The notes beneath the pieces were generated by a model. The model did not search any database. It worked only from the letters and a program-made list of their open reading frames with translations, and was not told where the DNA came from. 64,000 bases of DNA, taken from Ranitomeya imitator. Lineage: Eukaryota. Both the position numbers and the translations under genes were made by a program. Shown piece by piece: positions 32,545-63,837 of the stretch (the first letter of the stretch is position 1; each line of letters begins with the position of its first letter). The stretch lies in assembly GCF_032444005.1 (NCBI RefSeq), contig NC_091286.1:584660001-584724000 (forward strand), written 5' to 3'.

Positions 32545-32587
32545 ATGAGGATGACTCTTCGAGTGCTGCTATGTCTCAGCCTGTGGG
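32545..32587 (+). CDS. Sxph: Saxiphilin-like exon 1 (signal peptide MRMTLRVLLCLSLW)
   Basis: 43 coding nt, as in transferrin exon 1, with a G|gtaagt donor in phase 1. Joins exon 2 to give the signal ..SLWALSSA followed by mature APNTR. Confidence 0.85.
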
Positions 32588-32766
32588 GTAAGTACATGTC
32601 CATACAAGCTCATGATGGAATATGTCAATTTGCATATTTAAAATGTTGTTTTTGCCACTGGTTCCCAGCACTGATAACCTCCAAAATCCGCTGTTATTGC
32701 TGATCCTGTCACTGTACAGTTATTCATGTAGTGAGCTAAATCCTGCAAAGATGAACATGAGCATTA

Positions 32767-33094
32767 GGCTACGTTCAGACTAGCGTTGTGCGCCGCTGCG
32801 TCGGCGACGCAACGCACGACACACGCAAAAACGCGGCAAAACGCACGCAAAAACGCTGCGTTTTGCGACGCGTGCGTCGTTTTTTCCGAAAATCGGACGC
32901 AAGAAAAATGCAACTTGTTGCGTTTTCTTGGTCCGACGCTTGCGGCAAAAAAGACGCATGCGTCGCACAACGCAACAAACAAAAACGCATGCGTCCCCCA
33001 TGTTAAACATAGGGGCGCATGACGCGTGCGTCGCCGCTGCGTCGCCCGACGCTAACCCGACGCACACTAGCACAACGCTAGTCTGAACGTAGCC
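32767..33094. mobile_element. Harbinger-like palindromic MITE (intron 1)
   Basis: TIRs ggctacgttcagactagcg / cgctagtctgaacgtagcc and a TTA duplication. Confidence 0.85.
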
Positions 33095-34384
33095 TTAGTG
33101 ATGAGTAAATCTGACTATAATTGAATTCGATAGTTTGCTTGAATTTGGCAAGAAAATAACATTCAGATTAGTTATATTTGAAGCTAATGAAATGTATATT
33201 ATTGTGCCCTGAGGTTTCTCCAGAACATAATAAACATATGTGAAAAAATTATACTTGCCTTTCCTGCTGTGCAGCCGCACTCTGGCCCAATCCTTCTCTC
33301 CAGTCCGTTCTTCACTGGGCTATCCTCGACATCTTCAAGCACACAGTATCTTTGGCATCTTCCGGCCACTCTATTGATCGTACCAAAGATATGAGAGGGC
33401 CAGATGAGTATTAATTATCTTAAATTTTTTTTTAATCCCTACACTTCCTGTCCCGGCTAGTGGCAATTTTATTGAATTCGCATAAATGAAATTGCCAAAA
33501 AAAAATTGAGATTCTGTGGAATCTAATTTTTTGTAAAACTCAAGACAAATTGACTTCACCTTAAAGCCATTTTCTCATTTCTATAATTGTAATAATTTTT
33601 ATAAATAATATTATCATTACAGAATAAAACAAAAATATATATTTGTCTTTGCATGTGACGTGTTTTAGAAATAATATATTATTTCTAACAATACAATTCA
33701 GGGCCTCACACTCTTGAATGGTCATGCTCCTCTGTACTTCTGTTGAGCCCTGTGTCGCTTCTGAATAACTTCTTCTCAGGACAGTGAGTTGGCAAATACC
33801 TGATAGCAATAGATTGATCTCCACATGGGCAATTTTAATTGATTTCTTTGGATGAGGTGATCATTGATAGTTTTGAATGTATCAACTGTGACTCACTATT
33901 TGAGCAATATTCATTACTTTAGAATTCCACATTTCATTGGTAGCTCATGGGGATCTTCAGAGAATGACCACCCTCTCCCCAGCATGCATAACAGAGCTGC
34001 ACATAGAATAGCTGAGCTGGGCTACAACCCACTTATCAGGGAAATAACAATTTTGTAGAAGGGTCTGGGGGATATTATTTTTTGTTTAAAGGTTCATTGG
34101 TGCATTTGTTTTTTTATGAAGTAGATACGGTCATTAGGTGTAAATGTAGCTGGTATCAGAGGGATATTCAGCATACCATAGCTGAGCTTTGCTTACAACC
34201 CAGATGTTAGATATTTTATTAGAATAAACAATAGGGCCCATACAACTTTAGTATATACCTACAATATGCGCAGTCCCAGATTGGCCATCTGCCTGACCTG
34301 GCAGATTCCCGGTGGGCTGCAGCTCTGAAGAAAAAGTGGGCCGGGGCCCTGTTTTGTGGCCACTGGCCCTTTAAATTTTCTTCT

Positions 34385-35044
34385 TGTCAGACAGTCTGCA
34401 CAGAACTTACAGGCTAGCCTTGTGCGGGTGTCCAAAGTAGGAATGGCAGAGTTCGGGGCAGTCCAGGCTACAGGAGATGTGGAGCGGCGGTGAAGGGGAG
34501 ATGTGCTTCAGGCAAGCGTGACCAAGCACGTGATCGCCAGTGGGAGTGGCCGGAGGCGGAGACTGCACCCTGAAACCCAGAGAGCAAAGCTCGGGTGGAC
34601 GGAGTAGTAGACATGTCGGAAAGGCACAGGACACGACCAGAGGACGGCACAGATACCAGAGGGTCAGACAGAGACATAGTCAGGGTCAGGCCGGGGTCAG
34701 AACCAGAGAGATAGGTGCAGTACCAAAGGGCCCACACAGAGCGGGTAGTCAGAAATTCAAGCAGAAGTTAACACCAATCAAGCCAGAAAACAGTACCAAG
34801 ACAGTATACGAACTCACAACACAGGGACAAACTGGGTCAGAACCAAGAGATCAAGCACGATAAGAGGCACAAGGCACAGGCACACAAGGGTCAACCAACT
34901 CAGCTGAGGGCAGAAGTATAACTGACACCGGACCTAGGTAGATTGGCAACTAAATAGCCACCCACTGCCATAGAGAGGCAGATACATTTAACCCCTGTCT
35001 GACCAGGATGGGAAAAAGACAAAACCCCGTCCTGGATCATGACA
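34385..35044 (-). mobile_element. Solo LTR, probably Gypsy (intron 1)
   Basis: tgtcag...catgaca termini, a minus-strand tatttag TATA-like box, and near-duplicated flanks cttct/cttca. Confidence 0.65.
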
Positions 35045-35578
35045 CTTCATATTGTCAAGGTGTATGTGTGTGCACACACAAAGCCACTGCGGTACATGGG
35101 GCTGATTCTAAGCCTTTCCTTCTCTGTACAAAAAGCAATGGATGCACTGAAGCCTTTCATCTGCCTTCATCTCCACAATCTGGGAAAGTCCTATAGAGAT
35201 AGAGCCTTTTTATGTATACTTCTGTCCTAATGTCTCGTTTATGTGTACACCAAACCCAGTGTTTCCTATATATTGTATATACACCAATCTCAGGGTCTTC
35301 TATGTAATGTATATACAAGAGTATCTGATATAATGTATATATAGCAGTTGCAGTCTCCTATGTGATGTATATACAGCAGTCATAGTGTATTGTGTATGAT
35401 GTGACTTTTTGTTAAAAAATATTAATTAAGTACTTTATGTTTTTATAGCTGAGTTCATGTATTCATTAATCGCAGTGTGCTGATGTATTATGTATGCTTA
35501 GGGTCATTAGGGTCCTCTGAGCATGCTTGAATGAAATGTATGTTTTATTGTCACACCTAACATGGCTTACTCTGTATA

Positions 35579-38500
35579 CAGTGGGTACCGAAAGTATTCA
35601 TACCCCTGTAAATTTTTCACTCTTTATTTAATTGCAGTCATTTGGTAAATTCATAAAAGTTCATTTTTTCTCATTAATGTACAATCTGCACCCCATCTTG
35701 ACTGAAAAAACCCCAGAAATGTAGAATTTTTTGCAAATGTATTAAAAAATTAAAACTGAAATTTGACATGGTCATAAGTATTCAGACCCTTTGCTCAGTA
35801 TTGAGTAGAAGCACCTTTTGAGCTAGTACAGCCATGAGTCTTCTTGGGAATGATGCAACAAGTTTTTCACACCTGGATTTGGGGATCTTCTGCCATCCTT
35901 CCTTGCAGATCCTCTCCAATTCCATCAGGTTAGGTGGCAAACGTTGGTGGACATCCATTTTCAGGTCTCTCCAGAGATGCTCAATTGGGTTTAGGTCAGG
36001 GCTCTAGCTTGACCAGTCAAGAATGATCACGGAGTTGTTCTGAAGCCACTCCTGTGCTATTTTAGCTGTGTGCTTAGGGTCATTGCCCTGTTGGAAGGTG
36101 AACCTTCAGCCAAGTTTGAGGTCCAGAGCACTCTGGAAGAGGTTTTCATCCAGGATATCTCTGTCCTTGGCCGCATTCATGTTTCCTTCAATGGCAACCA
36201 GTCGTCCTGTCCCTGTAGCTGAAAAACACCCCATAGCATGATGCAGCCACCACCTTGTTTCACTGTTGGGATTCTATTGGGCAGGTGATGAGCAGTGCCT
36301 GGTTTTCTCCACACATACCGCTTAGAATTATCATCAAAAAGGTCTATCTTTGTTTAATCAAACCAGAGAATCTTTTTTCTCATACAACCCCTGGCAAAAA
36401 TTATGGAATCCACCGGCCTTGGCGGATGTTCATTCAGTTGTTTAATTTTGTAGAAAAAAATCAGATCACAGACATCGCACAAAACTAAAGTAATTTCAAA
36501 TGGCAACTCTCTGGCTTTAAGAAACACTAAAAGAAATCAAGAACAAAAAATATGGTAGTCAGTAATGGTTATTTTTTTTAACCAAGCATAGGGAAAAAAT
36601 TATGGAATCACTCAATTCTGAGGAAAAAAGTATGGAATCATGAAAAACAAACAAACAAATTCCAAAACATCACTAGTATTTTCTTGCACCACCTCTGGCT
36701 TTTATAACAGCTTGCAGTCCCTGGGGCATGAACTTAATGAGTGTCAAACAGTACTGTTCATCAATCAGGCTCCAACTTTCTCTTGCAATGGACCATTTTC
36801 TTCAACTTCCACCAAAGATTTTCAGTTGGATTGAGATCCGGAATATGTGAGGGCCATGACATTGACCTTATGTGTCTTTTTTCAAAGAATGTTATCACAG
36901 TTTTTGCTCTATGGCCGGATGCATTATTATCTTGAAAAATGATTTCATCATCCCCAAACATCCTTTCTTTTGATGGGATAAGAAAAGTGTCCAATATATC
37001 AACATAAACTTGTGCATTTATTGAAGCTGTAATGACAGCCATTTCCCCAGTGAATTTACCTGACATGCAGCCCCATATCATCAATGACTGTGGAAATTTG
37101 CATGTTCTCTTCAGGCAGTCATCTTTATAAATCTCATTGGAACGGTACCAAACAAAAGTTCCAGCATCATCACCTTGCCCAATGTTGATTCGCGATTCAT
37201 CACTGAATATGACTTTCATCCAGTCAGCCACAGTCCATGATTGCTTTTCCTTAGCCCATTGTAACCTTGTTTTTCTCTGTTTAGGTGTTAATGATGGCTT
37301 TCGTTTAGCTTTTCTGTATGTAAATCACATTTTCTTTAGGCGGTTTCTTACAGTTCAGTCACAGACGTTGACTCCAGTTTCCACCCATTCGTTCCTCATT
37401 TGTTTTGTTGTGCATTTCCTGTTTTGGAGACATATTGCTTTAAGTTTCCGGTCTTGACGCTTTGATGTCTTCCTTGGTCTACCAGTATGTTTGCCTTTAA
37501 TAACCTTCCCATGTTGTTTGTATTTGGTCCAGATTTTAGACACAGCTGACTGTGAGCAACAAATATCTTTTGCAACATTGCGTGATGATTTACCCTCTTT
37601 TAAGAGTTTGATAATCCTCTCCTTGGTTTTAATTGACATCTCACGTGTTGGAGCCATGATTCATGTCAGTCCACTTGGTGCAACAGCTCTCCAAGGTGTG
37701 ATCACTCCTTTTTAGATGCAGACTAACGAGCAGATCTAATTTGATGCAGGTGTTATTTTTGGGTATGAAAATTTACAGGGTGATTCCATAATTGGTTCCT
37801 CAGAATTGAGTCATTCCATAATTTTTTCCCTATGCTTGGTTAAAAAAAGTAACCATTACTGTCTATCACATTTTTTGTTCTTGATTGCTTTTAGTGCTTC
37901 TTAAAGCCAGAAAGTTGCCACTTGAAATTTTGAAATGACTTTAGTTTTGTGCCATGTCTGTGATCTGCTTTTTTTCTACAAAAATAAACAACTGAATGAA
38001 CATCCTCAAAGGCCGGTGATTCCATAATTTTTGCCATGGGTTGTAGTCTGGGAGTCCTTCATGTGTTTTTTAAGCAAACTCTATGCTGGCTTTCATATTT
38101 TTTGCACTGAGGAGAGGCTTCCATCGGGCCACTCTGTCATAAAGGCCAACTAGTGAAGGACTGCAATGATAGTTGACTTTGTGGAACTTTCTCCCATCCT
38201 CCTACTGCATCTCTGGAGCTCAGCCACAGTGATCTTGGGGTTCTTCTTTACCTCTCTCAACAAGGCTCTTCTCCCATGATTGCTCAATGTGGCTGGATGG
38301 CCAGGTTTAGGAAGACTTCTGGAGGTCCAAAACTTCTTCCATTTAAGGATTATGGAGGCCACTGTGCTCTTAGGAACCTTAAGTACTGCAGAAATTCTGT
38401 TGTAACCTTGGCCAGATCTGTGCCTTGCCAGAATTCTGTCTCTCAGCTCCTTGGCCAGTTCCTTTGACCTCATGATTCTCATTTGGTCTGACATACACTG

Positions 38501-38842
38501 TGAGCTGTGAGGTCTTATATAGACAGGTGTGTGTCTTTCCAAATCAAGTCCTCCAATGAAGGAGTAGAACCATCTCAAGGAGGATCACAAGGAAATGAAC
38601 AGCATGTGACTTAAATATGAATGTTTGAGCAAAGGGTCTGTATACTTATAACCATGTGATATTTCAGTTTTTATTTTTTAATAAATATGCAAAAATTTCT
38701 ACATTTCTATTTTTTTCAGTCAAGATGAGGTGTAAAGTGTACATTAATAAGAAGAAAATGAACTTTTTGAATTTACCAAATGGCTGCAATGAAACAAAGA
38801 GTGAAAAATTTAAAGAGATCTGAATACTTTCCATACCCACTG
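35579..38842 (-). mobile_element. Tc1-like transposon A (degenerate), split by Tc1 B
   Basis: TA|cagtgggtac..cccactg|TA with long TIRs. Minus ORF 38150-38578 reads MRSKELAKELRDRIL..GYNRIS..VPKSTV..WK. Confidence 0.9.
36385..38043 (-). mobile_element. Tc1-like transposon B nested in Tc1 A
   Basis: TA|caacccctggcaaaaattatggaatc TIRs. Minus ORFs 37355-37657 (GRPRK HTH region) and 36761-37231 (IFSDES, FQDNN, PDLNPTENLW). Confidence 0.9.
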
Positions 38843-38998
38843 TATATAGAAAACTGGGAATAACCATATAGGTCATTGCCATTTTAGGGGAAAAAAGCAC
38901 TTGTGAGACAAAAATAAATGCTTGTATTTATTAGAAATATACATTTTTATGAATAATATGTCATTTCCTTGTATAATCTTTATTCTGAAATTTTTCAG

Positions 38999-39162
38999 CT
39001 CTAAGCTCTGCAGCTCCCAATACAAGAAACGTACGTTGGTGTGTGACATCAGATACTGAAGAACAAAAGTGCCATGATCTGGAGACCTCTTGTCATGTAG
39101 ATGAGATTCTACTAAAATGTGTGAAAAAATCCAGCACTGAGGACTGTGTGAGAGCGATCAGT
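38999..39162 (+). CDS. Sxph: Saxiphilin-like exon 2 (N-lobe start)
   Basis: ttcag|CT..AGT|gtgagt. Encodes (A)LSSAAPNTRNVRWCVTSDTEEQKCHDLETSCHVDEILLKCVKKSSTEDCVRAIS, with the transferrin VRWC..E..KC..CV..C..AI pattern. Confidence 0.95.
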
Positions 39163-40635: not shown

Positions 40636-40741
40636 AATGGAGAAGCAGATGCTATTTCTCTGGATAGTAAAGACGTTTACAAAGCTTCATTAGATCCTTT
40701 TAATTTGAAGCCCATCATGACTGAAGCTTATTCTGAGAGCG
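40636..40741 (+). CDS. Sxph: Saxiphilin-like exon 3
   Basis: ttcag|AAT..AGC G|gtgagc. Encodes NGEADAISLDSKDVYKASLDPFNLKPIMTEAYSES, with the transferrin ADA..LD..Y.A..P.NLKP motif. Confidence 0.95.
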
Positions 40742-41972
40742 GTGAGCACTAAATTATTTTACTTATCTAGAATCAACTCTCAACAATCAGAAATGAACAT
40801 TTCTATGGTCCTATCCTAACCAAGATATTGGATTTATAAAACACAATAAAGTCAGTTCACCACCGCTAAGAAACTGCAAAGAAGGTACACGCACGAAAAA
40901 GAAGACGCGACAAAAGTCAGCAGAATTTCGATGGTTTGAACGGTTATATCAAACTTTCAACTTTATTTTGCATTTTTCTTTTCTTTATGCTCAGCTATCC
41001 TTCAGGACTCCTGAATTTTATTTTTTCTTTTCTATATTTAAAACTCCATTACGCATTATTCAGGAGTAATGGAGATTTTAAATATAGAAAAAATAAAACT
41101 TTTCTGTAATTAAAATTTAGCCACTGATGAGTGTCACTACTATGGCTGAAACATAGTAGCTTCATCACAGGCTCCTGTTCTGTTTTCATGTTTTTATTAC
41201 AACAGGGAATAGAAGAGATGTTTTTCAGCAAATCCAGCAATGAAGGCATTTCCTTTTTTTTCTGGCCTCATTGTGTTAAAGCTATAAAAATAATATGATT
41301 AAGCATCCTAAAAGAAATGTAAATTAAAAATGCCAGAATGCCGTATTATTCAGATTATAAGATGCACTTTTTTCCCTCAAATTCGGGATGAAAATGGGGG
41401 AGCGTCTTATAATGCAGATATACCTTTCCTGCTGCAGGTTGGGATGAGGGGGTGTTTGGATGTGTGGTGCGGCGCACCACTGCGGGTGTCCGGTGCTGCG
41501 GGTGTCCGCTACTACAGGTGTCCAGTGCTGCGCTGGCTCTGCCGACATCTTGTGAAAGCCCAGACCCCAGCAGTCACATGGCTTCCTATGCGGTGGACTG
41601 GACTCCGGGAAATTGTCTGCCGGCCAGGGGCGGTGCATGTACAGATGATAATTATTTATTTGTGTCTTAAGGCAATGTTCATATTGTGTGCAGTCCACAT
41701 GTCAGTCTCTCTGTCGGGGCTTCTGTCTGAAGCCCTGGAATACAGGATTCGGACAGAACCTCTGAAGGAGCCATTCGCTGTGAGGCAGACATAGTCAGGT
41801 GACAGCTCCCATCTGTTTCTGTAATACTTTGGAGGTATTTACTTTCTATGTCAGTATCATGACAACTTGTTATCTAGATCCTAAAAATAAGGTAATCTTC
41901 AATTCGCCATGAAACAGCATCTCTATTATGTGAATAGTCTTTCTTCTCTGATAATTTGTTTTATTTGGATAG

Positions 41973-42188
41973 AACATACCCCTTGTATGAGGCATCGACA
42001 GAATGTGCTCGGAGGAAAAATAATGAAAATAGGGGCATTTGTACCAAAATGTGATGAAAAGGGAAACTACGTTCCAAAGCAGTGTCATGGCAGCACCGGT
42101 TATTGTTGGTGTCTTAACGAAAATGGTGAAGAGATTGAAGGAACAAGAACTCCACCAGGAAATCCGGGCCTAACATGTGAAAATAAAG
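41973..42188 (+). CDS. Sxph: Saxiphilin-like exon 4: Thy1 domain 1 (6 Cys)
   Basis: 216 nt, phase 1/1. Encodes (E)[59 protein letters not shown]. Confidence 0.95.
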
Positions 42189-42289
42189 GTACTAACCCAT
42201 TCTATCAGTGTTCTCACCTCAGTCTCTACATTGGGTTAGTTATGCCCTTACTTACTATAGGTCATTCTTTACAATTAGGAGTCAGTTAA

Positions 42290-43613
42290 AGGGAACCTGT
42301 CACCTGTTTTGGCCGATATTAGCTGCGGCCACCAACTTTCACTGCTTATCGACAGCATTCTTTAATGTTGTAGATAAGCCCCCGATCTGACCTGCAAGAG
42401 AAGAAAAATAAGTTATATTATACTCACCGGGGGGGAGGCAATCCTGTGCATTCCGGTCCGATGGGTGTCGTAGGTCCGGGTCCGGCACCAGGAAAGGTCA
42501 GAGAGGCCCAGCGCCAACACACTGCAGTACTTTGCTCTGCCCTCAACACGGCAGAGAAGTACGCGTGTGCAGGAGCGCGATGCCAGGGAGCAATGAAGAA
42601 GCAGAAGAGCTTCGTCACAAGAAAATGGAAGGTGCCGGACCTGCAACACCCATCGGACCGGACCGCCCCCCGGGTGAGTATAATATAACTTATTTTTCTT
42701 CTCTTGCAGGTCAGATCGGGGGCTTATCTACATAAGCATGGCCGGCTCCAGGTTTTTGAGGGCCCCGGGCGAAAGAGTCTCAGTGGCCCCCCCTTAACAC
42801 ATACCACGATTCATGATGCCCAGATACAGCAGAGAGATATAGGTATAGTACAATGCCAGATTTCACTTCTTACATGAGTGATAGCTATTGGAAATTCTGC
42901 AGTGTGTATATACAGGACAGGAGGAGTGGTACTGTGCAGTGTATATATACAGGACAGGAAGAGTGGTACTGTGCAGTGTATATATACAGGACAGGAGAAG
43001 TGGTACTGTGCAGTGTATATATACAGGGGGAGTGATACGGTGCAGTGTATATATACAGGGGGAGTGGTACTGTGCAGTGTATATATACAGGAGGAGTGGT
43101 ACTGTGCAGTATATATATACAGGAGGAGTGGTACTGTGCAGTGTATATATACAGGAGGAGTGGTACTGTGCAGTGTATATATACAGGAGGAGTGGTACTG
43201 TGCAGTGTATATATACAGGAGGAGTGGTACTGTGCAGTATATATATACAGGAGGAGTGGTACTGTGCAGTGTATATATACAGGAGGAGTGGTACTGTGCA
43301 GTGTATATATACAGGACAGGAAGAGTGGTACTGTGCGGAGTATATATACAGGGGGAGTGATACGGTGCAGTGTATATATACAGGAGGAGTGGTACTGTGC
43401 AGTGAATATATACAGGGGGAGTGGTACTGTGCAGTGTATATATATATAGGGGGAGTGGTACTGTGCAGTGTATATACTTCAGCAGCCACCCAGTCCAGGC
43501 CCCTAGCACCTGTCCTGTATATATATTATATATACTGTATCTATACAGGCTGTATAAATACAGTATATACAGGACAGGTACTGGGGCCGGGGCTGGGCGG
43601 CTGCTGAAGTATA

Positions 43614-43644
<31 letters not shown>

Positions 43645-44054
43645 CAGCTGCAGCCGCCCAGCCCATGGCCGCCCCAGCTCACCCAGACTGTCAGAATACT
43701 GCGATATCATTGCACTCACTCAGGTGCGGGTAGGAGCTCCTCCAGAATCATCCTGATAAGTTCAGCAGTGCAGCCAGGGGCGGGAGAGCAGAGCAGGAGA
43801 ACGTGCTCTCTCCGCCCACAAACAATGTCACGCTGGCTGCGTTCTTAACCCCTATGTGCCTGCCTGCACTGAAGATGCTTGTGCCAGCTCCCACTGCCCG
43901 CACCTGTAAGACCGCCGTGCCCACAAATTGAAAGTGTAAGCGGCAGGAAAAACAGCGGGCAAGCGACAAGATAGATCTATGACAGCGTGAGTGGGCCCCT
44001 CGTTTCGCCAGGGCCCCGCAGATAATATCGGCTAAAACAGGTGACAGGTTCCCT
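42290..44054. mobile_element. T2/Kolobok-like MITE with a hAT-like insert at ~42737-44020 (intron 4)
   Basis: TTAA|agggaacctgtcacc..ggtgacaggttccct|TTAA, with an internal inverted repeat around 42380-42730. The insert begins catggccggctccagg. Confidence 0.8.
42900..43480. repeat. 32-bp minisatellite, about 17 units
   Basis: Unit gaggagtggtactgtgcagtgtatatatacag. It generates the spurious repetitive ORFs in the track. Confidence 0.95.
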
Positions 44055-44267
44055 TTAAATTATCTACAGTAGTTACAGAAATACATTTCATAAGGTTAGG
44101 GATGAAACATTCCACATAATAAATAGCAAGTGGGGGTGAGTAGCGGTCTCTATAATGTATGCTACCACAGGGCTATAGGGAGGGACACAGGGGACCATCT
44201 GAAAACATTTATTCTGAATACCTATAAGTGATTTACTAAGTAAATGGCTCTCCTATCCAAAATATAT

Positions 44268-44716
44268 AACCTACAAAAAAGAGGCGTACTAAGCCAATGT
44301 AAAATATTTAATCTTTATTAATTACATAGTTAAATAGAAATATACAAATAAAATAATTTAAAAAGTACTATAATACATTACCGATATTCATCTCTACAAG
44401 AGAGTATGATATGAATATATGCCTTACTAAGTCCAGTTCCCATATAGGTGTTACCAAAATATGTAGTGCCACCTAATGAACAGTATAGGCCTATGCACAT
44501 ACACCGGTAACCAAAATATGTCCTTTGCTCAGAACAAAATCCAGCTCTTAGGATACAATATTTTGGATAACAAAGTTAGTGTCAAGTGTATATGACTACA
44601 CGACAGTGGACGTTTTCTCTTTTTTAAACAATTTTATGTGTATATTTCCATGTAACTATGTAATTAGTAAAGATTAAATATTTTATATTGGCTTAGTACT
44701 CCTTTTTTGTAAGTTA
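44268..44716. repeat. ~62-bp inverted repeat pair (44268-44332 / 44652-44716)
   Basis: acaaaaaa..gtactaagccaatgtaaaatatttaatctttattaattacatagtt and its reverse complement. Possibly a truncated Penelope or MITE. Confidence 0.7.
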
Positions 44717-45365
44717 AACATTTATTCTGAGTTGGTCAGTGTAATTATCCCAGGTGAAGGAGAGAGGGTGAGGTTTGCCAACACTGAAGGGAGTGGGAGT
44801 GAAGATTGTATCCACCACGAGGGTAATGATTAGCTGCCCTCATAGGGAATATAAGGGGTATCACACTAGACGTGGCAGGAAGACTGGTATATGTGTGAGG
44901 CATACATTCCAGCTTTTTCTAGTCATCCTATGCCAAGAACTAAAAAGTTTACTGTATTTTCCTTTTCCTTTTGGGTCCTATCTCTTCTCTGTACCACAAT
45001 GATTCTATGTAACGGCTTAAAAGGAAATTCTCATTTGGACTCTTCTGCTGGGCCTTGGTATGCCTCTGATTTCACACCAAATTTTCATGTATGGTTCCAT
45101 ATTATTCATTGGTTTTTGGAGAGCAAACACATTGGCACACAAGGAGTACAATGGAGCCGCTACAGTACTGACTGTACTCCTTTGGATTAAATCTTTACAT
45201 TATATTAAAAGTAGCCATCAATACAGAAACTACAACTTTAATCTCTATTTAAAAAAAAAAACATGCAATGCTTCAGGACCTTCGTTACCACAGTTAAGAT
45301 TATATGATACAACATACATAGCAATAAACGGCTTCATAAACTCTTGGTTATATATCCATTTTTAG

Positions 45366-45572
45366 CAAACAAACCTCCCTGCTTGAAGGAACGTCAGAAA
45401 CTGCTCAGTGCTAAACCTTCACCAGCAGTTTTTGTGCCGGAATGTGATGAAAAGGGCAACTATCGACCTCAGCAGTCCCATGTCTACTCCTGGTGCGTGG
45501 ATGAATATGGGGAAGAGGTTTTTGGCTCCAGAACTTTCCCTGGAAAACCACCAAATCCATGTGAAGCTTCTG
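45366..45572 (+). CDS. Sxph: Saxiphilin-like exon 5: Thy1 domain 2 (4 Cys, 3-aa loop deletion)
   Basis: 207 nt, phase 1/1. Encodes (A)NKPPCLKERQ..FVPECDEKGNYRPQQSHVYSWCVDEYGEEVFGSRTFPGKPPNPCEAS. Confidence 0.93.
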
Positions 45573-45661
45573 GTAAGAATCTACTTCACTCTTCCATCCT
45601 CTCCCTGTGTATAGATGTTATTACAGGCAGTGATTACAGATATAACACTACACGGAGTCAC

Positions 45662-46080
45662 TATTATTATTATTATTTATTGTTATAGCGCCATTTATTC
45701 CATGGCGCTTTACATGTGAGGAGGGGTATACATAATAAAAACAAGTACAATAATCTTAAACAATACAAGTCATAACTGGTACAGGAGGAGAGAGGACCCT
45801 GCCCGCGAAGGCTCACAATCTACAAGGGATGGGTGAGGATACAGTAGGTGAGGGTAGAGCTGGTCGTGCAGTGGTTTGGTCGATCGGTGGTTACTACAGG
45901 TTATAGGCTTGTTGGAAGAGGTGGGTCTTCAGGTTCTTTTTGAAGGTTTCGATGGTAGGCGAGAGTCTGATGTGTTGTGGTAGAGGGTTCCAGTGTAGGG
46001 GTGATACGCGAGAGAAATCTTGTACACGATTGTGGGAAGAGGAGATAAGAGGGGAGTAGAGAAGGAGATCTTGTGAGGAT
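45662..46080 (-). mobile_element. L2/CR1-group LINE 3' fragment (intron 5)
   Basis: Reverse (TAA)n tail followed by tatagcgccatttattccatggcgctttaca..gctcacaatcta, typical of L2-type 3' ends. Confidence 0.6.
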
Positions 46081-46302
46081 TTATCACTGATACATTGTGA
46101 CTCTATAATTGTGTAATATCATTGTTGGGCTCCTTGTTATTGTATGCAGAAGTGATAGAGAAGAAGGTGGATCTAAGCTCAGCCTACAACAGCTCTGATG
46201 GGCTGAGAAATATTTGATGAAAGTATGGTATGAAGGTCATCCTACAATATAGTCAGGAATATACAGAAAATAACAACAATTCTTCTATATTTGTCTTATC
46301 AG

Positions 46303-46518
46303 GTGAAACGCTCTGCATAAAAGAACGTAATAAAGTGCTCAGCGCAGCAGAACCTTTACGAGGAGCCTTTGTACCGGACTGTGATGAAAATGGCTACTTT
46401 AGTCCATTGCAGTCCCACGGCAGCACCGGATACAGTTGGTGTGTTACCAAGAATGGTGACGAGATAAAGGGCACAAGGACTGGACCGGGGCAGACACCCC
46501 CTACGTGTGAGGTCCCAG
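46303..46518 (+). CDS. Sxph: Saxiphilin-like exon 6: Thy1 domain 3 (4 Cys)
   Basis: 216 nt, phase 1/1. Encodes (G)ETLCIKERN..FVPDCDENGYFSPLQSHGSTGYSWCVTKNGDEIKGTRTGPGQTPPTCEVP. Confidence 0.95.
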
Positions 46519-47240
46519 GTGAGGAACTACAGAGTATGTCAGGCATCACATTTGTGGGACACCGGCTGACCAAGGCCACTTTTCTAAGCCCCAACACAAC
46601 TACTGAATAAAATAGCGTGCCGGCACCAAAAAAATACTACTTTTTGCGTAATATACCATATTTTGCAACTTCTTAACACTATAAATCATAAAGATTTGAT
46701 AAATTCTCTTCTTAAAGTTCAATTCAATATGAAAGATCGCATAAAATCTTTGCTCTGATATTTATGTCCTCTTTTTGGACCTTTGCCTTCCACGCTCATT
46801 CATTTTTTAAATTAGAAAAACTTTTTATTAAAATGTTTTGTTACCCAAACAGAAAAACACAAAACCCCCAATCCTGCCCCACGCTCAGCCATTTGGTCCT
46901 ACAGTGAAGCATCATACTTGGCAGTGGAAAGTGCAATAAGCCGTCCCCGCTTAATTGTAAATTGCTGCGGAATATGTTGGCGCTGCAAAAATACAATTTG
47001 TAATATTATTGTTAAGCTCTAGTATTTCATACTGTGGTTATCTACTTGAACATTGTGCATGCCACCCTTGTCTATGCCACCTTAACTACTCTACCTGCCT
47101 AAGTGGATCAAGAAAGATACGTACTAGTCATATTCTCTATATTTGTTTTTTAGTTCTTTTAGTTTTTGTTTTTATTAATGTAAGATGAACAAAGCACTTA
47201 GTTATTGCCTGTCTGTTCCAATTGAAACAATTATTGAGAG

Positions 47241-50200
47241 TGTTCTGTCTTCATACATGTTGATACGGTGTGTGATCCAACATACAGCATAAACCATTTC
47301 TGTCTTCCAAATAAGCAGACTGTTCTCTGTAGTCTAACTTGTTTATTGGTAACAGGTATTGAAATGCGGTAAAACTAAAGGAATACAAATGACATATATA
47401 AGTATTGGGCTAAACAATCACACAGCTGCTACTTTACAACTGACAAAGAAAGTATACAGTATGATGCAACCTAAGTACATAACTACATACAGTAAGTCGC
47501 TGGTAATCACATTTCCTGTGTACTGACTGCTATACAGTTAATCACATTCTGTACAACACTACATTGCAAGAACAGGGATAATGATCTTACCGGATAAACT
47601 TAACCAGGATGGCAAGTAAGTGAGGTAGTTCCAACACAGCAGAAGAACACGTGTGTCCAGGAAGAACACAGGGAGAAAATGGAGGTTCCTCATCCCAAAA
47701 TGCCTTGGTTCAATCCCACAATGCAACACTCTAATTATTACTAAAAAACACAGGTAATAAATTTAGCCACCACTGGGTGGTGCTATAACACAGCAAAAAT
47801 TGGAATCATACTGTCCTTTTGAATGGACAGAACACTCCCCGCTTGGCATCAACCGATGCCACACACAGCTCTTTTGGCGAAAACAGTAATACAAGTTCCG
47901 CAACTGGTCTGAGGAATTAAACGAACGAGGGCACAAACAAGTGAGTTCCAAGTTGAGAACCTGTTGAAACGGTGGGATTTGAGGTGATTGTCTTTAGCCA
48001 CCATACGTAGAACGGATACCTGAGGGCGGATTTCCCCATCTGCCTCTGGATCCACCAATTCAAAGGTGTTTGACTCGTCAATGTATGGCGTCGAACAATA
48101 TAAGAATGTAGGGCCAGTAAACCTGGTTGAGTCCTTAAGATGTCTTGCTTCAACAGATCTGGTTGCATGGTCCGCAGGATTGTGTTGTGTGGACACATAA
48201 TGCCACTGTTTAGGGTCGGTGGATCTCCTGATCCTTAGCATCCGATTGCTGACAGACATAAAAGCGACGAGTTTCATTGGAAATGTACCCTAGCACTACC
48301 TTGCTGTCAGTGTAGAACTCGACTTCTTTGACGTCCAGGTCCATTTCTGTCAAGATAAGTTCAGCTAACTCTACCTCTAGCACAGCTGCACAGAGTTCCA
48401 GTCTGGGTACTGTGTGTTCATGGAGTGGGGCCAGTTTTGTCCGGCTCATAACAAGCCTTACATGGCATTGTTCGTTGATGTCGGTAGTTTTCAAATACGC
48501 TACTGCTGCAATTGCTTTGGTTGAGGTATTGCAGAAGATACAAAGCCTTTGCATCTCAACTTCTGTTGATGGCACGGAAGCATATGGTCGTGCCACGTAG
48601 AGACTTGGCAGGGCTTCTAACGAGTTCTTCCATCTTACCCATAAGTCTCTTTTCTCGCTGGGAAGCGGATCATCCCAATTGGACATCTCTTGGGTGAGGG
48701 CTCTCAACATCATTTTACCTTGGATAGTTACAGGAGTTACAAATCCCAGAGGATCGTACAAGCTGTTTACTACGGACAGGACGCCTCTGCGCGTGAAGGG
48801 TTTCTCTTCTTCGCTGATCTGGAAGGTGAATGCATCCTTTTTCAAATCCCAGAGTAAACCAAGGCTCCGCTGCATAGGAAGGGAGTCCATGCTTAAATCC
48901 AAGTCTTTTAAATCGGTTGAGTAATCTTGAGAGGGAAATGCTGCCATTAGTTTTTGGCTGTTGAAAGCAATTTTGTGCAACCTCAAATTGGACGAAGCGA
49001 GCATTTCTTGTGCCCTTCTTAGGAGACTGACTGCCGACTCATCTGTGGGTGTGGATTTCAGTCAGTCATCTACGTAGAAATCCTTTTCCACAAAAGATCT
49101 TACATCCGATCCATACTTTGCTTCACCCTCTCTGGCTGAATGTCTAAGGCCATAGATAGTGACAGCAGGGGAGGGGCTGTTCCCGAAGATATGTACCTTC
49201 ATACGATATTCCACGATATCCTTGTAGGGGTCATTATCGCGGTACCAGAAGAACCTCAAGTAGTTTCTGTGTTCTTCTTTAACAAGGAAGCAGTGAAATA
49301 TCTGTTGGATGTCGGCCATAAATGCTACTGCATCCTTGAGGAAGCGAAGAAGTACTCCCAGAAGTCGGTTATTGAGGTCTGGACAAGATAGAAAGACGTT
49401 GTTTAATGAAACACCTTTGTATCTGGCACTTGAGTCAAATACTACTCTTATCTGACCTGGTTTCTTTGGATGATACATGCCGAAAATAGGTAAGTACCAA
49501 CATTCCTCAGAATCTTGAAGTACAGGTGCAATTTCCGCGTGGCCACTCTGGAATATTCTCTCCATGAAGGTAAAGCAGTGTTCCTTTGTCTCTGGTGTCT
49601 TCTGCAGTTTGCGTGTAAGGGAGACAAATCGACTGTAGACAAGTTCTCTGTTGTTGGGTCAGCGTTGCCTCTGTGGTTTGAATGGTAAAGGTGCAACCCA
49701 ACTCTTTGATTCATCTCTTACTATCTCTTGCTCCATGATGTCCAAGAACAGTCTGTCCTCTATGGACGTTGCTACCTGGTTGTTTTCTCTTGTCCTGTGG
49801 AAAACTGTGCACCCTATATGATCTTCCTCACCGTCGCATGCATGGTCTTCACAGGAAGGATCAGCTAACGGACGAGATGGAGGGGCGTTGTGTGGCAATT
49901 CTTTAATCAGGAAACTGCTCTCGCATGGCTGGAAGAGAGACAGACGTCCATTTTCAAGAGTATTGGTGAGCATATTGTTGACTGATGTCGGCCTGTGTGC
50001 TCCACCCAAACAGACGTCTCCCACGATGACCCATTCTAGGTCAAGTCTCTGAGCATATGGGGCGTTCTGTGGGCCGTTAATCTGTCCTCTAGCCTTGTGG
50101 ACCCGTAGTATGTCTCTTCCGAGGAGTAAGACAATTGGAGCTCCTTGGTCCAGTTCCGGTATCAGGTGAGCTATACGTTTCAAGTGGGTATGATGAGCTG

Positions 50201-52200
50201 CTACCTCTGGTGTAGGTATCTCAGACCTGTTGTCGGGAATCTGGTTGCACTCCAGTATTGATGGCAAGGATAAGCAGGTTTGACCATCCATAGACTCTAC
50301 CTTGAATCCGATCGCTTTTCTCCCCGTTGTCTCGACAGTACCTGCACATGTCTTCAAGGAGAACAGAGAGCCGGGACGGGCAATGTTGAAGGTGTCGAAG
50401 AGAAAGGACTTAGCTAGGGACCTGTTGCTCTGATCGTCCAAGATTGCATATACCTTGATTGCCTTATCCCAATGGCTCGCTGGGAATACTCTGACAAGAC
50501 ATATCTTCGAGCAGGATCTTCCTGCTACAAGTTCCTTGCAGATCTCTGTACACTGAGAAGTGGCCACGGGGGTGTCTATGTCAGGGTCCATCTGTTTTTC
50601 GGCAGACTCTTCTACTTGTGACAATACCCCTGAGGGTGGTCCAAGGTGTAAGGCCATGTTGTGCTCCACACTACTACATTCTGCGTATTTCATACTGGTT
50701 TCACAGTTCTTGGTGAAGTGTGAGGTCGTCGCGCAGCATCTGAAGCATATCTTGTTTTCCTTTAGGAAACTCTTACGGTCTTCTAGAGACTTCTCCCTGA
50801 AGGCTCTACATTTTAGTAGAGGATGAGGTTTCTTGTGTAGGGGGCAGTGTTTGCTGAGATCCTGAGGTTTGTCCTCTTCTGGAGATGACTTACCTGCCCT
50901 GTAAGGAAAACCTGTGGAGGTAACATTAGTTTTGTGGTCTCGCTCAGATTCCGGAAACTCCACGGCTTCTAAGATCTCAGCTTTGGCTATTGCGGCTGCT
51001 GCTTCTTTTTCAGTGGAAAGTCTTTCCAAAGTTGCTCGCAGGCGTGCTGTATCTGCGTCTCTATCAGCTTGCAGGCGGGCTCTTTCTGCTTCTTGCTCTG
51101 CTTGCAGGCGGTCTCTTTCTGCTTCTCTATCTGCTTGCAGGCGAGCTCTTTCTGCTTCTTGCTCTGCTTGTCTTAACTTTAACTGCATCTCTTGTGCAGC
51201 GAAGGAGGATCTTCCTTTCGCCGCCTCAGCTTCTGCACGGGCGAGGGTGACAGACCTTTTCGAGGAAGACTTGCTAGAGCGGCTTGTTTGGGACCTCGTC
51301 CCGAGTGAAGATGCTCGACTTGAAGACATTTTGTGTCCGTTTGCAAGATGTAGGACGTCTCAGAGCGGGTAGAAATGAACTTCAGCATGGACTGAGACGT
51401 GTCGCGCTTGGTGGGCTGTACTCTCTGTACTTGTGGCTGTATGGCGGCCGCTGCAGTATCTGCAGGCAGTGCGGTGTGGTACAAGTGGCTGTGTAAGTGG
51501 TATTTGCTATCGTTGGCGTCTAGCCTGGTATTACTGCTATCGCTGGTGTCTAGCATCCGTTTTACTGTTCTGTCTTCATACACGTTGATACGGTGTGTGA
51601 TCCAACATACAGCATAAACCACTTCTGTCTTACAAATAAGCAGACTGTTCTCTGTAGTCTAACTTGTTTATTGGTAACAGGTATTGAAATGCGGTAAAAC
51701 TAAAGGAATACAAATGACATATACAGTATAAGTATTGGGCTAAACAATCACACAGCTGATACTTTACAACTGACAAAGAAAGTATACAGTATGATGCAAC
51801 CTAAGTGCATAACTACATACAGTAAGTCCCTGGTAATCACATTTCCTGTGTACTGACTGTTATACAGTTAATCACATTCTGTACAACACTACATTGCAAG
51901 AACAGGGATAATGATCTTACCAGATAAACTTAACCAGGATGGCAAGTAAGTGAGGTAGTTCCAACACAGCAGAAGATCACATGTGTCCAGGAAGAACACA
52001 GGGAGAAAATGGAGGTTCCTCATCCCAAAATGCCTTGGTGCAGTCCCAAAATGCAACACTCTAATTATTACTAAAAAACACAGGTAATAAATTTAGCCAC
52101 CACTGGGTGGTGCTATAACACAGCAAAAACCAAAACGCTAATAGTAGTGAACTTTTAATGCATAATTGGAATCATACAGTCCTTTTGAATGGACAGAACA
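47241..52200 (-). mobile_element. BEL/Pao LTR retrotransposon, degenerate, antisense in intron 6
   Basis: LTRs 47241-47834 and 51566-52200 (TG..CA). TSD gagag at 47236-47240 and 52201-52205. Minus-strand PPT gcggggag. Confidence 0.93.
47849..51329 (-). pseudogene. BEL/Pao gag-protease-RT-RNaseH fragments; integrase largely missing
   Basis: Triple Cys-His knuckles (CPLHKKPHPLLKC, CFRCC..HFTKNC), ILDDQSN, WYLP..RVVFD..YVDD and PRLELCAAV. Confidence 0.9.
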
Positions 52201-54558: not shown

Positions 54559-55657
54559 GGGGCCCAGCATATACTGGAGGCCCAAAATATACTGGAGCAG
54601 TATATGGAGACCAACATATTCTAGAACATTATATGGGGACAATTTTTTATGGAGCATTATATGGGTCCCGGCATATACTGGAGCATTATTTGGAACCCTG
54701 CATATATTGGAGCATTATCTGGAGCCCAGCATATACTAGAGCACTATATGGGGCCCAGCATATACTGAAGCATTATATGGGGCCCAGCTTGTACTGGAGC
54801 ATTATAGGGAGACAAGTATATACTGGAGCATTATATATGGCCCATCATATACTGGAGCATTATATTGGGCCCAGCATATAATGGAGAATTATATGGGGCC
54901 CAGCATATACTGGACCACTATATGGGGCCCATTATATACTGGACCATTATATGGAGCCCATTATATACTGGAGCTTTATATGGGGCCTAGCATATACTGG
55001 AGCATTATATGTGGCCCAGCATATACTGGAGCATTATATGAAGCCAAGTATATACTGGAGCATTATATGGGGCCCATCATATACTGGAGCATTAAATGAG
55101 GCCCAGCATATACTGGAGCATTATAGGGAGCCAAGTATATACTGGAGCATTATATGGGGCCCAAAATATACTGGAGCATTATATGGGGACCAATATATTC
55201 TAGAACATTATATGGGGACCATTTTTTATGGAGCATTATATGGGTCCCGGCATATACTGGAGCATTATATATGGCCCATCATATACTGGAGCATTATATA
55301 GAGCCTAGTATGTACTGAAGTATTATATGGGGCCCATCATATACTGGAGCATTATATGGGCCCAGCATATACTTGACCATTATATGGAGCCCATTATATA
55401 CCGGAGCATTATATGGGGCCCAGTTTATGCTGGAGCATTATATGGAGCTCAGTATATACTGGAGTATTATATGGGGCCCATCATATACTGGACCATTATA
55501 TGGAGCCCATTATATACTGGACCATTATATGGAGCCCATTATATACTGGACCATTATATGGAGCCCATTATATACTGGAGCATTATATGGGGCCCAGCAT
55601 ATTCTGGAGCATTATATAGAGACTAGTATATACTGGAGTATTATATGGGCACCATAT
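54559..55657. repeat. ~30-bp minisatellite
   Basis: Unit ggggcccagcatatactggagcattatat with variants. Confidence 0.9.
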
Positions 55658-58422: not shown

Positions 58423-58614
58423 CTCCTGTGACGCTGCACTATGCCGTCGCTGTGGTTAAAAAATCGAGTAGCTTCCATCTTGATCAATTGAAAGGCAAGA
58501 GATCTTGTCATTCTGCGGTGGGAGAGGCAGCAGGTTGGGTCGCTCCTTTGAATGTACTCCTTAAGAAGAAATTACTGTTGTGGGAAGAACCGGAACCAAA
58601 AACTATTGAAAAAG
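58423..58614 (+). CDS. Sxph: Saxiphilin-like exon 7 (N-lobe resumes)
   Basis: ttcag|CT..AAA G|gtacaa. Encodes (A)PVTLHYAVAVVKKSSSFHLDQLKGKRSCHSAVGEAAGWVAPLNVLLKKKLLLWEEPEPKTIEK. Confidence 0.95.
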
Positions 58615-60587: not shown

Positions 60588-60723
60588 TTGCCTCAGAGAT
60601 CTTCTCAGCGAGCTGTGCCCCAGGAGCCCAAGAGGAGAACCTGTGTGAGCAGTGTGCAGGCCAGGAAGATAAGTGCACACGTGGTCCTGGAGAGCCGTAC
60701 TATGGGGATGAAGGTGCCTTTAG
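60588..60723 (+). CDS. Sxph: Saxiphilin-like exon 8
   Basis: catag|TT..TTT AG|gtgagg. Encodes (V)[44 protein letters not shown](R). Confidence 0.95.
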
Positions 60724-61385
60724 GTGAGGTACAATGCAACTTTTAAGGTTGTGCTTCCACAGGAGTTTTTAGTGAGTTTTTGATGCTACTTATTTTCGCT
60801 GCATTACAATTCAATGTTTGTCTAACTTTTGAAATTTACCATTTGACTCTTATTATCCCCGAGACTTTTTTCTTGCACTTTGTTTGACAATACAAATACA
60901 ACCAGGTTCAAGGGAGCTTGACAAAGCATAATTCCATTCTAAAGAAACAACATAACCAAGTAAGGCATTTTTCCCAAAGAAAAATCAGTCACACCTTTAG
61001 ACTCAAAATCTGTCATCAAGATTAATAGAGAATAAAAAAAATCAAGCCAATCAATTGAGTGGAAATCTGTTCTGTAGTGAAAACTGCAGCAAATCAGCAA
61101 CCACTGGTGGGTGAAGAGGTCACGTGACACCAATGTCAAGTGACTACTAGGAATTGCTGCAGCAATATCATTGCAATGGCGCCGCTCTGTGAGGTCAGCA
61201 TCAAGCATTTTTACATTATGAGGGGCTCTGGAACAATTAAGGAGCAATTGCCTAGCAGTATTCAGCCTCTTCAATGAACCCATGTACATTAGATTAAAGT
61301 AGTCCAAATGTCCCGATTTTGATGGCATCGATCCATGGTGTAATGCAGTGTTTCCCAACTCCGGTCCTCAAGATCTGCCATCTGA

Positions 61386-62589
61386 GGCCGGCCTCACACT
61401 AGCGAGTTTTACGGACATATGAGAGGTGCAGAAAATACGGATTGCACACGGTACAATGATTCTCTATGGCCCAGCTCCTATCTGCTGTATTTTACTGATC
61501 CGTATTATACGGTGTTCTACGGCCGTAGAAAATCTCAGCATGCTGCGTTTGTCACCGTAAAAAATACGCCAATGAAAGTCAATGGGGGCGAGAAAAATAT
61601 GGATTACACACGGACCAACAGTGTGACTTGCGAGAAATACACAGCTGTGTTCTATAGAAAAGCCGGCAATTCAGCGCGGTGTACAGTAAAATCACACTGA
61701 CAGGGTAGAATAGAATAGCTATTAGCTAAGATAAATGTCTACACATAGTATAGGGGTATATATATGTATACAGTATATATTTATATGTCAGTGAGACACT
61801 TATATGTATATATATTAATATTTCATACAGCACGAGATAGCTTAAAAGCCGGTAATTCAATTGCCGGCTTTTCCTATCGCCTTCTCAAACTCGACATGAT
61901 ATGAGACATGGTTTACATACAGTAAACCATCTCATATCCCTTTTTTTTTGCATAATCCACACTACTAATGTTAGTAGTGTGTATGTGCAAAAGTTGGGCT
62001 CTGTAGCTATTGAATTAAAGGGTTAAATCGCGGAAAAAATTGGCGTGGGCTCCTGCGCAATTTTCTCTACCAGAATGGTAAAGCCAGTGACTGAGGGCAG
62101 ATATTAATAGCCTGGAGAGGATCCATGGTTATAGGACACCCCCCCCCCGGCTAAAAACATCTGCCCCCAGCCACCCCAGAAAAGGCACATCTGGAAGATG
62201 CTCCGATTCTGGCACTTAGCCACTCTCTACTTATTCCCGTGTAGCGGTGGGATATGGGGTAATGAAGGGTTAATGTCACCTTGCTATTGTGTGTATATGT
62301 GTGTCTCACTGACATATATATATATATATATATATATGACAGTATATATGTCTTTACGATTATTTGAGCCCATGGATCCATTGTATGTCCGTATGTCGGT
62401 TTTGCAAGCCGTTGAGAAAGTCTCGCAGTACGGATGTCATGCGGATTACATACGGAGGATGCCATGCGCAAAATACGCTGACACAAACTGCCTACGGATG
62501 ACATACAGATCACTATTTTGGGGACTTTTCTGCGTATTATGGCCGTAAAAAACGGACCATATTTTTCTACGCTGAGTGTGAGGCCGGCC
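61386..62589. mobile_element. Harbinger-like MITE (intron 8)
   Basis: TGA|ggccggcctcacac .. gtgtgaggccggcc|TGA. Confidence 0.8.
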
Positions 62590-62639
62590 TGAGATCCGCC
62601 ATCTGGTTATGTTTTCAGAATTTCCCTAGTATTGCACAG

Positions 62640-62850
62640 GTAACATAGTAACATAGTTTTTAAGGTTGAAGGAAGACTTTACGTCCATCTAGTTCAACCC
62701 ATAGCCTAACCTAACATGCCCTAACATGTTGATCCAGAGGAAGGCAAAAAAAAAAAACATTTGGCAAAGAGTAAGCTCCACATTGGGGAAAAAAAATCCT
62801 TCCCGACTCCACATACGGCAATCAGACTGGTTCCCTGGATCAACACCCTA
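62640..62850 (-). mobile_element. CR1 3' end fragment
   Basis: Reverse tail gtaacatagtaacatagt, the same octamer tail as the CR1 at 4451. Confidence 0.75.
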
Positions 62851-62996
62851 AGGGTATGTGCACACGATGTGGATTTTGTTGCGGATCCGCAGCGTTTCCG
62901 CAGATTTTCATTGCTGTCAAAGGGTAGATGTAATTTCTTAAAAAGTCATGCCCACTGAGTGTTTAAAGACGCTGTTGATGTGAGCATTTGGGGTCT

Positions 62997-63037
62997 TTGC
63001 CTGATGAAGAGACATATGTAGTCTCGAAAGCTTGCAA
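62997..63037 (+). ncRNA. Minimal type-I hammerhead ribozyme motif with intact core
   Basis: ttgc CTGATGA a GAGAC atatgta GTCTC GAAA GC T T gcaa: 4-bp stem I, 5-bp stem II and a palindromic AAGCTT stem III. Confidence 0.7.
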
Positions 63038-63454
63038 TTTGTTACCATCTTTTCAGTTAGCCATTAAAAGGTATCAACCACTGAGGACTCTCAATTCAAA
63101 ATATTTAGCATTTTTGGTGTTTTTTTCTCTATAGGTTTCTATGGGGAGCATGAGAAACACGCATAAAAATGATGCTATGTTTTGAAGTTGTTGTTTGATA
63201 ATTCATTCATCAAGTGAGCATGGCTCGAGATTGCACCAAAGGTCATTAAATAAATAAATAATTATTGAAATCAAAGAACCCAACACCCCTTGCCTGTGTC
63301 TCCTCTTCTCACTTCCACAGCACTGTGGTCACTCAAATAATACATTATACATAACATAATTTCTACAAACTTAGTGTATCTAAAAGTAAATTATCTTTTT
63401 AGCAAATACCTCCCCACTGGGATAATCTATAAGCATCAAACTTCTATTGCCTAA

Positions 63455-63668
63455 AGCTGCCCATACACATTAGATGGCTGTCTGACGAACAGTGTTTCTC
63501 ACCGATAGTCCCATATTACCATAGTTCCTTGACTGAATGATCGTTCCTGTGTTCTCTATAAGAAATCTGCTGGCTGACACCTTGGCACCCACACTCACAT
63601 TAGACAGTCGGCTGAACCTGTTGATATCGGTGGTTTTGGCAGACATTAGGCTAATGTGTATGAGGGCT
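63455..63668. mobile_element. Small MITE
   Basis: agctgcccatacacattag / ctaatgtgtatgagggct, flanked by TAA-like sequence. Confidence 0.6.
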
Positions 63669-63781
63669 TTTATGGTGAATCTAGCTCTGGCAGACACTAA
63701 GTCATATGCAGTATTTATTACGGCTAAAACAGGGAGTATAAAATAATGACTTATGAATGCATGCTTTTTTTCTTTGGTCAG

Positions 63782-63837
63782 GTGTTTGAGAGAGGATAAA
63801 GGAGATGTGGCTTTTGTAGAAGACACAGCATTAACAG
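63782..63837 (+). CDS. Sxph: Saxiphilin-like exon 9; the gene continues beyond the window
   Basis: gtcag|G..ACA G|gtaatg. 56 nt, like transferrin exon 6. Encodes (R)CLREDKGDVAFVEDTALT. Confidence 0.95.

Follow-up and report, generated by a model that had tools for sequence, protein, structure and literature searches.

Among vertebrate “toxin sponges”, saxiphilin is the one understood best, and it serves as a model for designing saxitoxin sensors and antidotes. In the bullfrog protein, the thyroglobulin type-1 (Thy1) repeats inhibit cathepsins and papain with nanomolar potency, and a split of these repeats into types 1A and 1B was described (PMC6584486). The number of Thy1 domains differs among frogs: bullfrog, N. 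parkeri and Mantella saxiphilins have two, those of dendrobatids and the cane toad have three, and those of Bufo have 15-16 (Chen et al. 2022, PMC9636910), and the saxiphilins of the dendrobatids Oophaga sylvatica (OsSxph) and Ranitomeya imitator (RiSxph) bind saxitoxin, not tetrodotoxin (PMC9636910). Here we analysed a stretch of 64,000 nucleotides of R. imitator DNA (NC_091286.1, positions 584,660,001 to 584,724,000 of the forward strand; hereafter the window), in which a saxiphilin-like gene had been proposed from the sequence alone. The window very probably holds the 5' half of a saxiphilin gene that is intact and transcribed. Its product, XP_069584020.1, is a putatively secreted two-lobed protein of transferrin fold with no iron site left in either lobe, and is the Glu540/Phe782 member of a paralogue pair. 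Beyond the original prediction, this gene is one of four tandem paralogues, and it is distinct from the tested RiSxph.

The coding exons were recovered by alignment to a 919-residue relative taken from a single-exon search, and all GT/AG pairs were then scored for each junction. Nine coding exons were found on the + strand between 32545 and 63837, with AG acceptors and GT donors throughout. They total 1336 nucleotides, that is 445 codons plus one base, and contain no stop; start, end and codon count of the nine-exon frame proposed earlier were reproduced exactly by this independent recovery. The exons are listed below by window position, with ligand and pocket residues here and throughout in mature bullfrog numbering (chain index minus 19, the mature protein beginning at chain residue 20).

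32545-32587, + strand: coding exon 1, start codon and most of a predicted 19-residue signal peptide, ending in phase 1
38999-39162, + strand: coding exon 2, start of the transferrin N1 subdomain, Pfam Transferrin profile positions 1-44
40636-40741, + strand: coding exon 3, remainder of N1 until the Thy1 insertion point, Pfam Transferrin profile positions 46-80
41973-42188, + strand: coding exon 4, Thy1-1 of type 1A, 216 nucleotides, phase 1-1, six Cys, Pfam Thyroglobulin_1 E 3.6e-21
45366-45572, + strand: coding exon 5, Thy1-2 of type 1B, 207 nucleotides, phase 1-1, four Cys, Pfam Thyroglobulin_1 E 2.1e-15
46303-46518, + strand: coding exon 6, Thy1-3 of type 1B, 216 nucleotides, phase 1-1, four Cys, Pfam Thyroglobulin_1 E 3.4e-19
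58423-58614, + strand: coding exon 7, start of the N2 subdomain, Pfam Transferrin profile positions 83-147, with Tyr95, Thr120 and Arg124 replaced by His, Ser and Glu
60588-60723, + strand: coding exon 8, N2, with Asp at the Tyr188 ligand position and AG/GT splice sites
63782-63837, + strand: coding exon 9, the final coding exon inside the window, followed by 11 more downstream

In exon 1, the ATG at 32545 is preceded by an in-frame TAG (32539-32541) and the donor is GTAAGT; the hydrophobic 19-residue N-terminus aligns with the signal peptide of bullfrog saxiphilin, and its assignment as a signal peptide comes from this alignment. Exon 2 (splice sites AG/GTGAGT) shares 83% identity with Epipedobates tricolor saxiphilin and exon 8 shares 89% with residues 391-435 of the same protein, while the top solved-structure match of exon 7 is to saxiphilin chain residues 251-317 (E 8e-29).

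The gene continues beyond the window and reaches window-equivalent position 115101 (C5:584775101), with 20 coding exons across about 82.6 kb. The downstream exons, in window-equivalent positions, are as follows.

73055-73218, 86962-87109, 87213-87364 and 87479-87575, + strand: coding exons 10-13
90621-90662, + strand: coding exon 14, a 42-nucleotide mini-exon with good splice sites
91063-91227, 97217-97367, 112165-112229, 112889-113073 and 114471-114669, + strand: coding exons 15-19
115070-115101, + strand: coding exon 20, 32 nucleotides, found by comparison with RefSeq proteins

All 19 introns of this model have canonical GT-AG ends and no internal stop occurs, so the downstream exons carry neither a frameshift nor a stop and the full frame of 911 amino acids stays open. 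Its translation equals RefSeq XP_069584020.1 (saxiphilin-like, Ranitomeya imitator, 911 amino acids) residue for residue. The original prediction called the gene invisible to the open reading frame (ORF) track; it was indeed missed by the bacterial-style ORF list, but public annotation has it, correctly, as a member of a family that is already well described, and the gene as such is no new find.

Two other joins were tried at the 3' half and rejected. Joining exon 13 to an acceptor at 91021 yields 14 residues unlike any relative and removes Tyr558. This acceptor was rejected because the relatives all share a conserved 14-residue segment including Tyr558, the exon 13 donor is common to all four genome copies, and the 42-nucleotide mini-exon encodes this segment. 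A C-terminus made by read-through of the exon 19 donor (917 amino acids) was ruled out by the RefSeq comparison, which led to the 32-nucleotide exon 20.

A short upstream reading frame of nine codons lies at 32512-32541 and closes at the TAG three bases 5' of the start codon. In the neighbouring saxiphilin copy described below, a stop stands at the same place upstream of the start, yet the protein from the published RiSxph cDNA reads through it with an 11-residue N-terminal extension. Several repeats sit in the introns. Intron 1 contains two Tc1/Sleeping-Beauty-like transposase fragments (36761-38578, - strand), and intron 6 contains a Pao/BEL-type retrotransposon (47849-51329, - strand; Peptidase_A17, E 1e-44) with adjoining long ORFs. 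Tandem arrays are located in intron 4 (42917-43476; 17 copies of 32 bp) and intron 6 (54566-55649; 37 copies of 29 bp), and these two arrays gave rise to long spurious ORFs in the mechanical ORF list.

In the full protein, the Pfam Transferrin family is matched in three stretches (E 8e-153), together with three Thyroglobulin_1 domains. The three Thy1 exons sit between Transferrin profile positions 80 and 83, and this insertion column is identical to that of bullfrog, N. parkeri and dendrobatid saxiphilins. The predicted order of signal peptide (by alignment), N-lobe start and three Thy1 domains holds, while the “rest of the N-lobe” assigned to the window does not, since the window stops at residue 445 and the N-lobe match extends to residue 549. 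Three Thy1 domains as a dendrobatid trait, against two in the bullfrog, as had been stated with the prediction, agree with Chen et al. 2022 (PMC9636910).

Family placement was assessed by sequence, fold and phylogeny. Identity is 83-95% to dendrobatid saxiphilins versus 49-55% to frog transferrins, which bears out the assignment to saxiphilin in that comparison, and among solved structures searched by sequence the saxiphilin chains score 1144 bits versus 554 bits for the best true transferrin. For the predicted structure (mean predicted local distance difference test score 77.5), the top fifteen fold matches are all saxiphilin crystal entries, followed by transferrins. In a maximum-likelihood tree of 29 proteins, the window gene falls in a clade with saxiphilins of P. 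terribilis, O. sylvatica, D. tinctorius and R. imitator (support 98/97). An intact dendrobatid-type saxiphilin, as had been proposed, is supported by the exact RefSeq match, the three Thy1 domains and the position in this clade, which includes all characterised dendrobatid saxiphilins.

A change in disulfides was observed in Thy1-2 (45366-45572), where both cysteines of the inter-strand disulfide are Ser. The same is seen in the O. sylvatica, D. tinctorius, P. terribilis and R. imitator saxiphilins and in a clade with Val540 (see below), while the pair is retained in E. tricolor, A. femoralis, Anomaloglossus and the third dendrobatine clade. From this distribution, it is a paired loss by which a type 1A domain became type 1B.

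The saxitoxin pocket was said to lie outside the window, which is correct; it was retrieved downstream and is intact. The “EFDD” motif (Glu540, Phe784, Asp785, Asp794) and Tyr558, Phe561 and Tyr795 are all present, encoded by exons 13-15 and 19. Over the twelve pocket positions (E540, Y558, F561, S563, N727, F782, F784, D785, M787, R789, D794, Y795), all twelve residues match both OsSxph and the E. tricolor protein (EtSxph). Both lobes have substitutions among the iron and carbonate ligands (Y95H, T120S, R124E, Y188D, R456D, Y517H, H585Q), in seven columns at which frog and turtle transferrins hold Y/T/R-or-K/Y/R/Y/H. The only ligands remaining are Asp63, His249, Asp392, Tyr426 and Thr452, which make a complete set in neither lobe, and an iron-binding transferrin was ruled out on this ground.

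By analogy with solved homologues and with near-identical proteins that were assayed, the product would serve as a “toxin sponge” in plasma, binding a single saxitoxin molecule at a pocket on the surface of its C1 subdomain. The two guanidinium rings would be coordinated by Glu540 and Asp794, and Phe784 would give a cation-pi contact with the toxin, with Tyr558, Phe561, Asp785 and Tyr795 lining the pocket. The three Thy1 modules (one 1A, two 1B) would be wedge-type inhibitors of papain-like cysteine proteases.

For transcription, four public runs (X1-X4) that contain about the exon share of the window's sampled words were placed on 41800-46700. In X1-X3, depth reaches thousands to tens of thousands over the three Thy1 exons and is essentially zero over unique intron sequence (44096-45243), other intronic depth coming from multi-copy repeats. 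The GT..AG joint 42188 to 45366 (exons 4-5) was found in contigs identical to the window copy, and the joint 45572 to 46303 (exons 5-6) in all four runs, while loose ends behind 46518 in X1-X3 spell the first bases of exon 7. These joints and the empty introns make an origin of the contigs from genomic DNA impossible. Several contigs are mismatch-free over sites that separate the window copy from its neighbour, including one that spans the exon 4-5 joint and two that span the exon 5-6 joint, and at seven diagnostic sites the alternative letter is that of the neighbouring copy. Both copies are transcribed and are spliced as modelled over the Thy1 exons. For spliced transcripts of the predicted gene, two joints and the exon 6-7 loose end are seen in RNA-like runs over 41800-46700.

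Over 41800-46700, the four runs showed no joint of the window gene that skips an exon. In R. variabilis, a saxiphilin-like gene (XP_077147354 to XP_077147360) has predicted isoforms of 910, 838, 803, 769, 762, 748 and 676 amino acids; certain size differences among them (72 and 141 residues) come near one or two Thy1 units, which fits skipping of phase 1-1 Thy1 exons. A 1461-nucleotide contig in X4 (record 25), from a differently labelled organism, spans the three Thy1 exons in order. It has 27 other letters instead of the last 29 bases of Thy1-1 (42159-42188) and the neighbouring copy's letters in Thy1-3, and these differences point to another copy or a relative as its source.

The genomic surroundings were surveyed by a whole-genome protein search of the 5.96-Gb genome, in which the two distant copies are known from exon loci and RefSeq proteins. 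Four same-strand saxiphilin-like exon series lie on C5, at about 583.49-583.67, 584.29-584.44, 584.52-584.64 and 584.69-584.78 Mb. Matched to RefSeq by exon peptides, the array members are XP_069584007, XP_069584018, XP_069584019 (RiSxph) and XP_069584020 (the window gene, which is the last), and transferrin-like exons were found on the same chromosome at 584.17 and 585.00 Mb. In the tree, the four array genes sort into three paralogue clades that also contain members from R. variabilis, D. tinctorius and P. terribilis. The adjacent copy starts about 171 kb upstream (coding start to coding start) with the same orientation and the same 20-exon structure; its full reconstruction matches XP_069584019.1 exactly and shares 99.4% identity with the RiSxph expressed by Chen et al. 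Between it and the window gene, protein identity is 95% with 44 amino-acid differences, mostly in the C-lobe. Aligned introns of the two copies show 6.7% mismatch, and the introns are very unequal in length, the exon 13-15 span, for instance, being 3.4 kb versus 27.6 kb.

Two of the differences fall in the pocket, where Glu540/Phe782 in the window gene stand against Asp540/Val782 in RiSxph, and annotations of both R. variabilis and D. tinctorius contain this Glu/Phe and Asp/Val pair as well. Informative sites favour, by 10 to 1, a pairing of the window gene with R. variabilis XP_077147379 and of RiSxph with XP_077147378, which places the duplication before the split of R. imitator and R. variabilis. 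Compared with D. tinctorius, only three sites, including positions 540 and 782, favour pairing by pocket type, against 35 that favour grouping by species; this pattern may reflect either gene conversion after an old duplication or independent changes that occurred repeatedly. The synonymous divergence (dS) of the two R. imitator copies is 0.052 and the ratio of non-synonymous to synonymous rates (dN/dS) is 0.39 (43 non-synonymous and 30 synonymous differences; p = 1.4e-4 versus neutrality), indicating purifying selection on the gene.

Among the four tandem copies, variation is found at pocket positions 540, 563, 727, 782 and 795. The XP_069584007 clade, comprising the copy at 583.49-583.67 Mb and its R. 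variabilis and D. tinctorius relatives, has Val540 and Ala/Val795 and retains Phe784, Asp785 and Asp794; its members may bind saxitoxin poorly or take another ligand. For the Glu/Phe and Asp/Val pair, it is possible, and we put it forward tentatively from the residue patterns, that selection at two affinity-tuning pocket positions keeps the paralogues distinct, giving a repertoire of sponges with differing affinities or congener selectivities. If this is true, the published “species differences” at position 540 are partly comparisons of different paralogues. No paper on saxiphilin paralogues or duplication was found in the literature searched, an absence that holds for the searched library alone.

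Several points weigh against reading the locus as an intact, transcribed saxitoxin-binding saxiphilin. The assayed RiSxph is the product of the neighbouring gene (99.4% identical to that copy and 95% to the window gene), and natural exposure of these frogs to saxitoxin has yet to be settled (PMC10783871). The latter also feeds the view that the locus encodes a member of the saxiphilin family whose chief physiological ligand is not saxitoxin, and which may take dietary lipophilic alkaloids or work mainly as a three-headed cysteine-protease inhibitor. In thermal proteome profiling of O. sylvatica, saxiphilin was among the proteins shifted by decahydroquinoline (bioRxiv 10.1101/591115), and the divergence of the tandem copies at the five pocket positions named above would suit such a role as well. 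However, every saxitoxin hot-spot residue is kept in the window gene and its pocket is the same at twelve positions as that of OsSxph, a tight saxitoxin binder, while the main plasma alkaloid binder of poison frogs is a serpin unrelated to saxiphilin (PMC10783871). We consider a different chief ligand unlikely. The predicted structure has a global template modelling score (TM-score) of only about 0.5 versus the saxiphilin crystals and a large root-mean-square deviation; these figures were not used, and the low scores are ascribed to uncertainty in how the domains of this five-module protein are arranged (predicted TM-score 0.46) rather than to a different fold.

The remaining objections concern the status of the gene as a copy. 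The runs were merely guessed to be RNA and are kept as contigs, from which levels and full-length isoforms are not derivable, and the junctions seen are limited to 4-5, 5-6 and the loose end from exon 6 to 7. Moreover, dN/dS averages both copies, one of which could be less constrained, and it is 0.55 in the C-lobe half. Together with a synonymous divergence from the neighbour of only about 5% and a greater contig depth of the neighbour's letters at the diagnostic sites, this would fit a redundant recent duplicate that is becoming a pseudogene, still open and transcribed after selection has gone. The depth hints that the neighbouring copy is the commoner transcript, but it is a poor measure and no quantitative claim is made from it. 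Such decay is very unlikely, given an intact frame of 911 codons with 19 canonical introns, an overall dN/dS significantly below 1, the maintenance of both copies since before the R. imitator/R. variabilis split (10 sites to 1), and copy-specific spliced contigs at very high depth. An assembly artefact, in which two haplotypes of a single RiSxph gene were placed side by side, might be suspected because the copies lie next to each other, point the same way and share 95% protein identity. It is hardly credible with introns that differ by 6.7% and are so unequal in length over exons 13-15, with that Glu/Phe and Asp/Val pair recurring in the annotations of R. variabilis and D. tinctorius, and with both variants present in all three of the runs X1-X3. 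From the above, an intact and transcribed saxiphilin gene, separate from that of RiSxph, is the reading that we retain.

These results bear on how dendrobatid saxiphilins are compared. Dendrobatids carry a small tandem saxiphilin family with differing pocket residues, and the “RiSxph” biochemistry covers one of the four tandem genes of R. imitator, while the window gene is the copy with the canonical Glu at the position that adds more to the binding energy than any other. Work on saxiphilin expression, plasma abundance and toxin affinity in dendrobatids must therefore separate copies that are 95% identical.

Compared with known systems, the closest is RiSxph (UZF13187.1; genomic copy XP_069584019.1), which, like the window gene, has three Thy1 domains and has lost the same iron ligands; recombinant RiSxph was shown to bind saxitoxin, while for the window gene binding is expected from its relatives. 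OsSxph (91% overall identity to the window gene) also has three Thy1 domains and lacks the third disulfide in Thy1-2, as here, whereas EtSxph (83% overall identity; three Thy1 domains) has kept it. The best solved match by both sequence and fold is bullfrog saxiphilin (RcSxph; PDB 6O0D, 6O0F; 58% identity), which shares the iron-site-free transferrin scaffold, the Thy1 insert between N1 and N2, and Glu540, Phe784, Asp785 and Asp794 with Tyr558, Phe561 and Tyr795. It differs in having two Thy1 domains instead of three and in the periphery of the pocket, with Thr563, Pro727, Ile782, Gln787 and Lys789 for Ser, Asn, Phe, Met and Arg in the window gene. The disulfide Cys234-Cys825, which is specific to RcSxph and joins its C-terminal tail to the beginning of N2, is absent from the window gene, where a Leu is encoded at the first site (58423-58440) and the tail (115070-115101) is without the final Cys. 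With serotransferrins, the window gene shares the two-lobed fold, the exon layout and the conserved disulfide framework, but its ligands are replaced in both lobes and about 210 Thy1 residues are inserted. With thyropins, such as the p41 invariant-chain fragment, it shares Thy1 units, each exon matching Thyroglobulin_1 near full length with a 1A or 1B cysteine pattern that follows the split described for the bullfrog protein (PMC6584486); in the window gene, however, these putative inhibitor domains are embedded in a transferrin scaffold.

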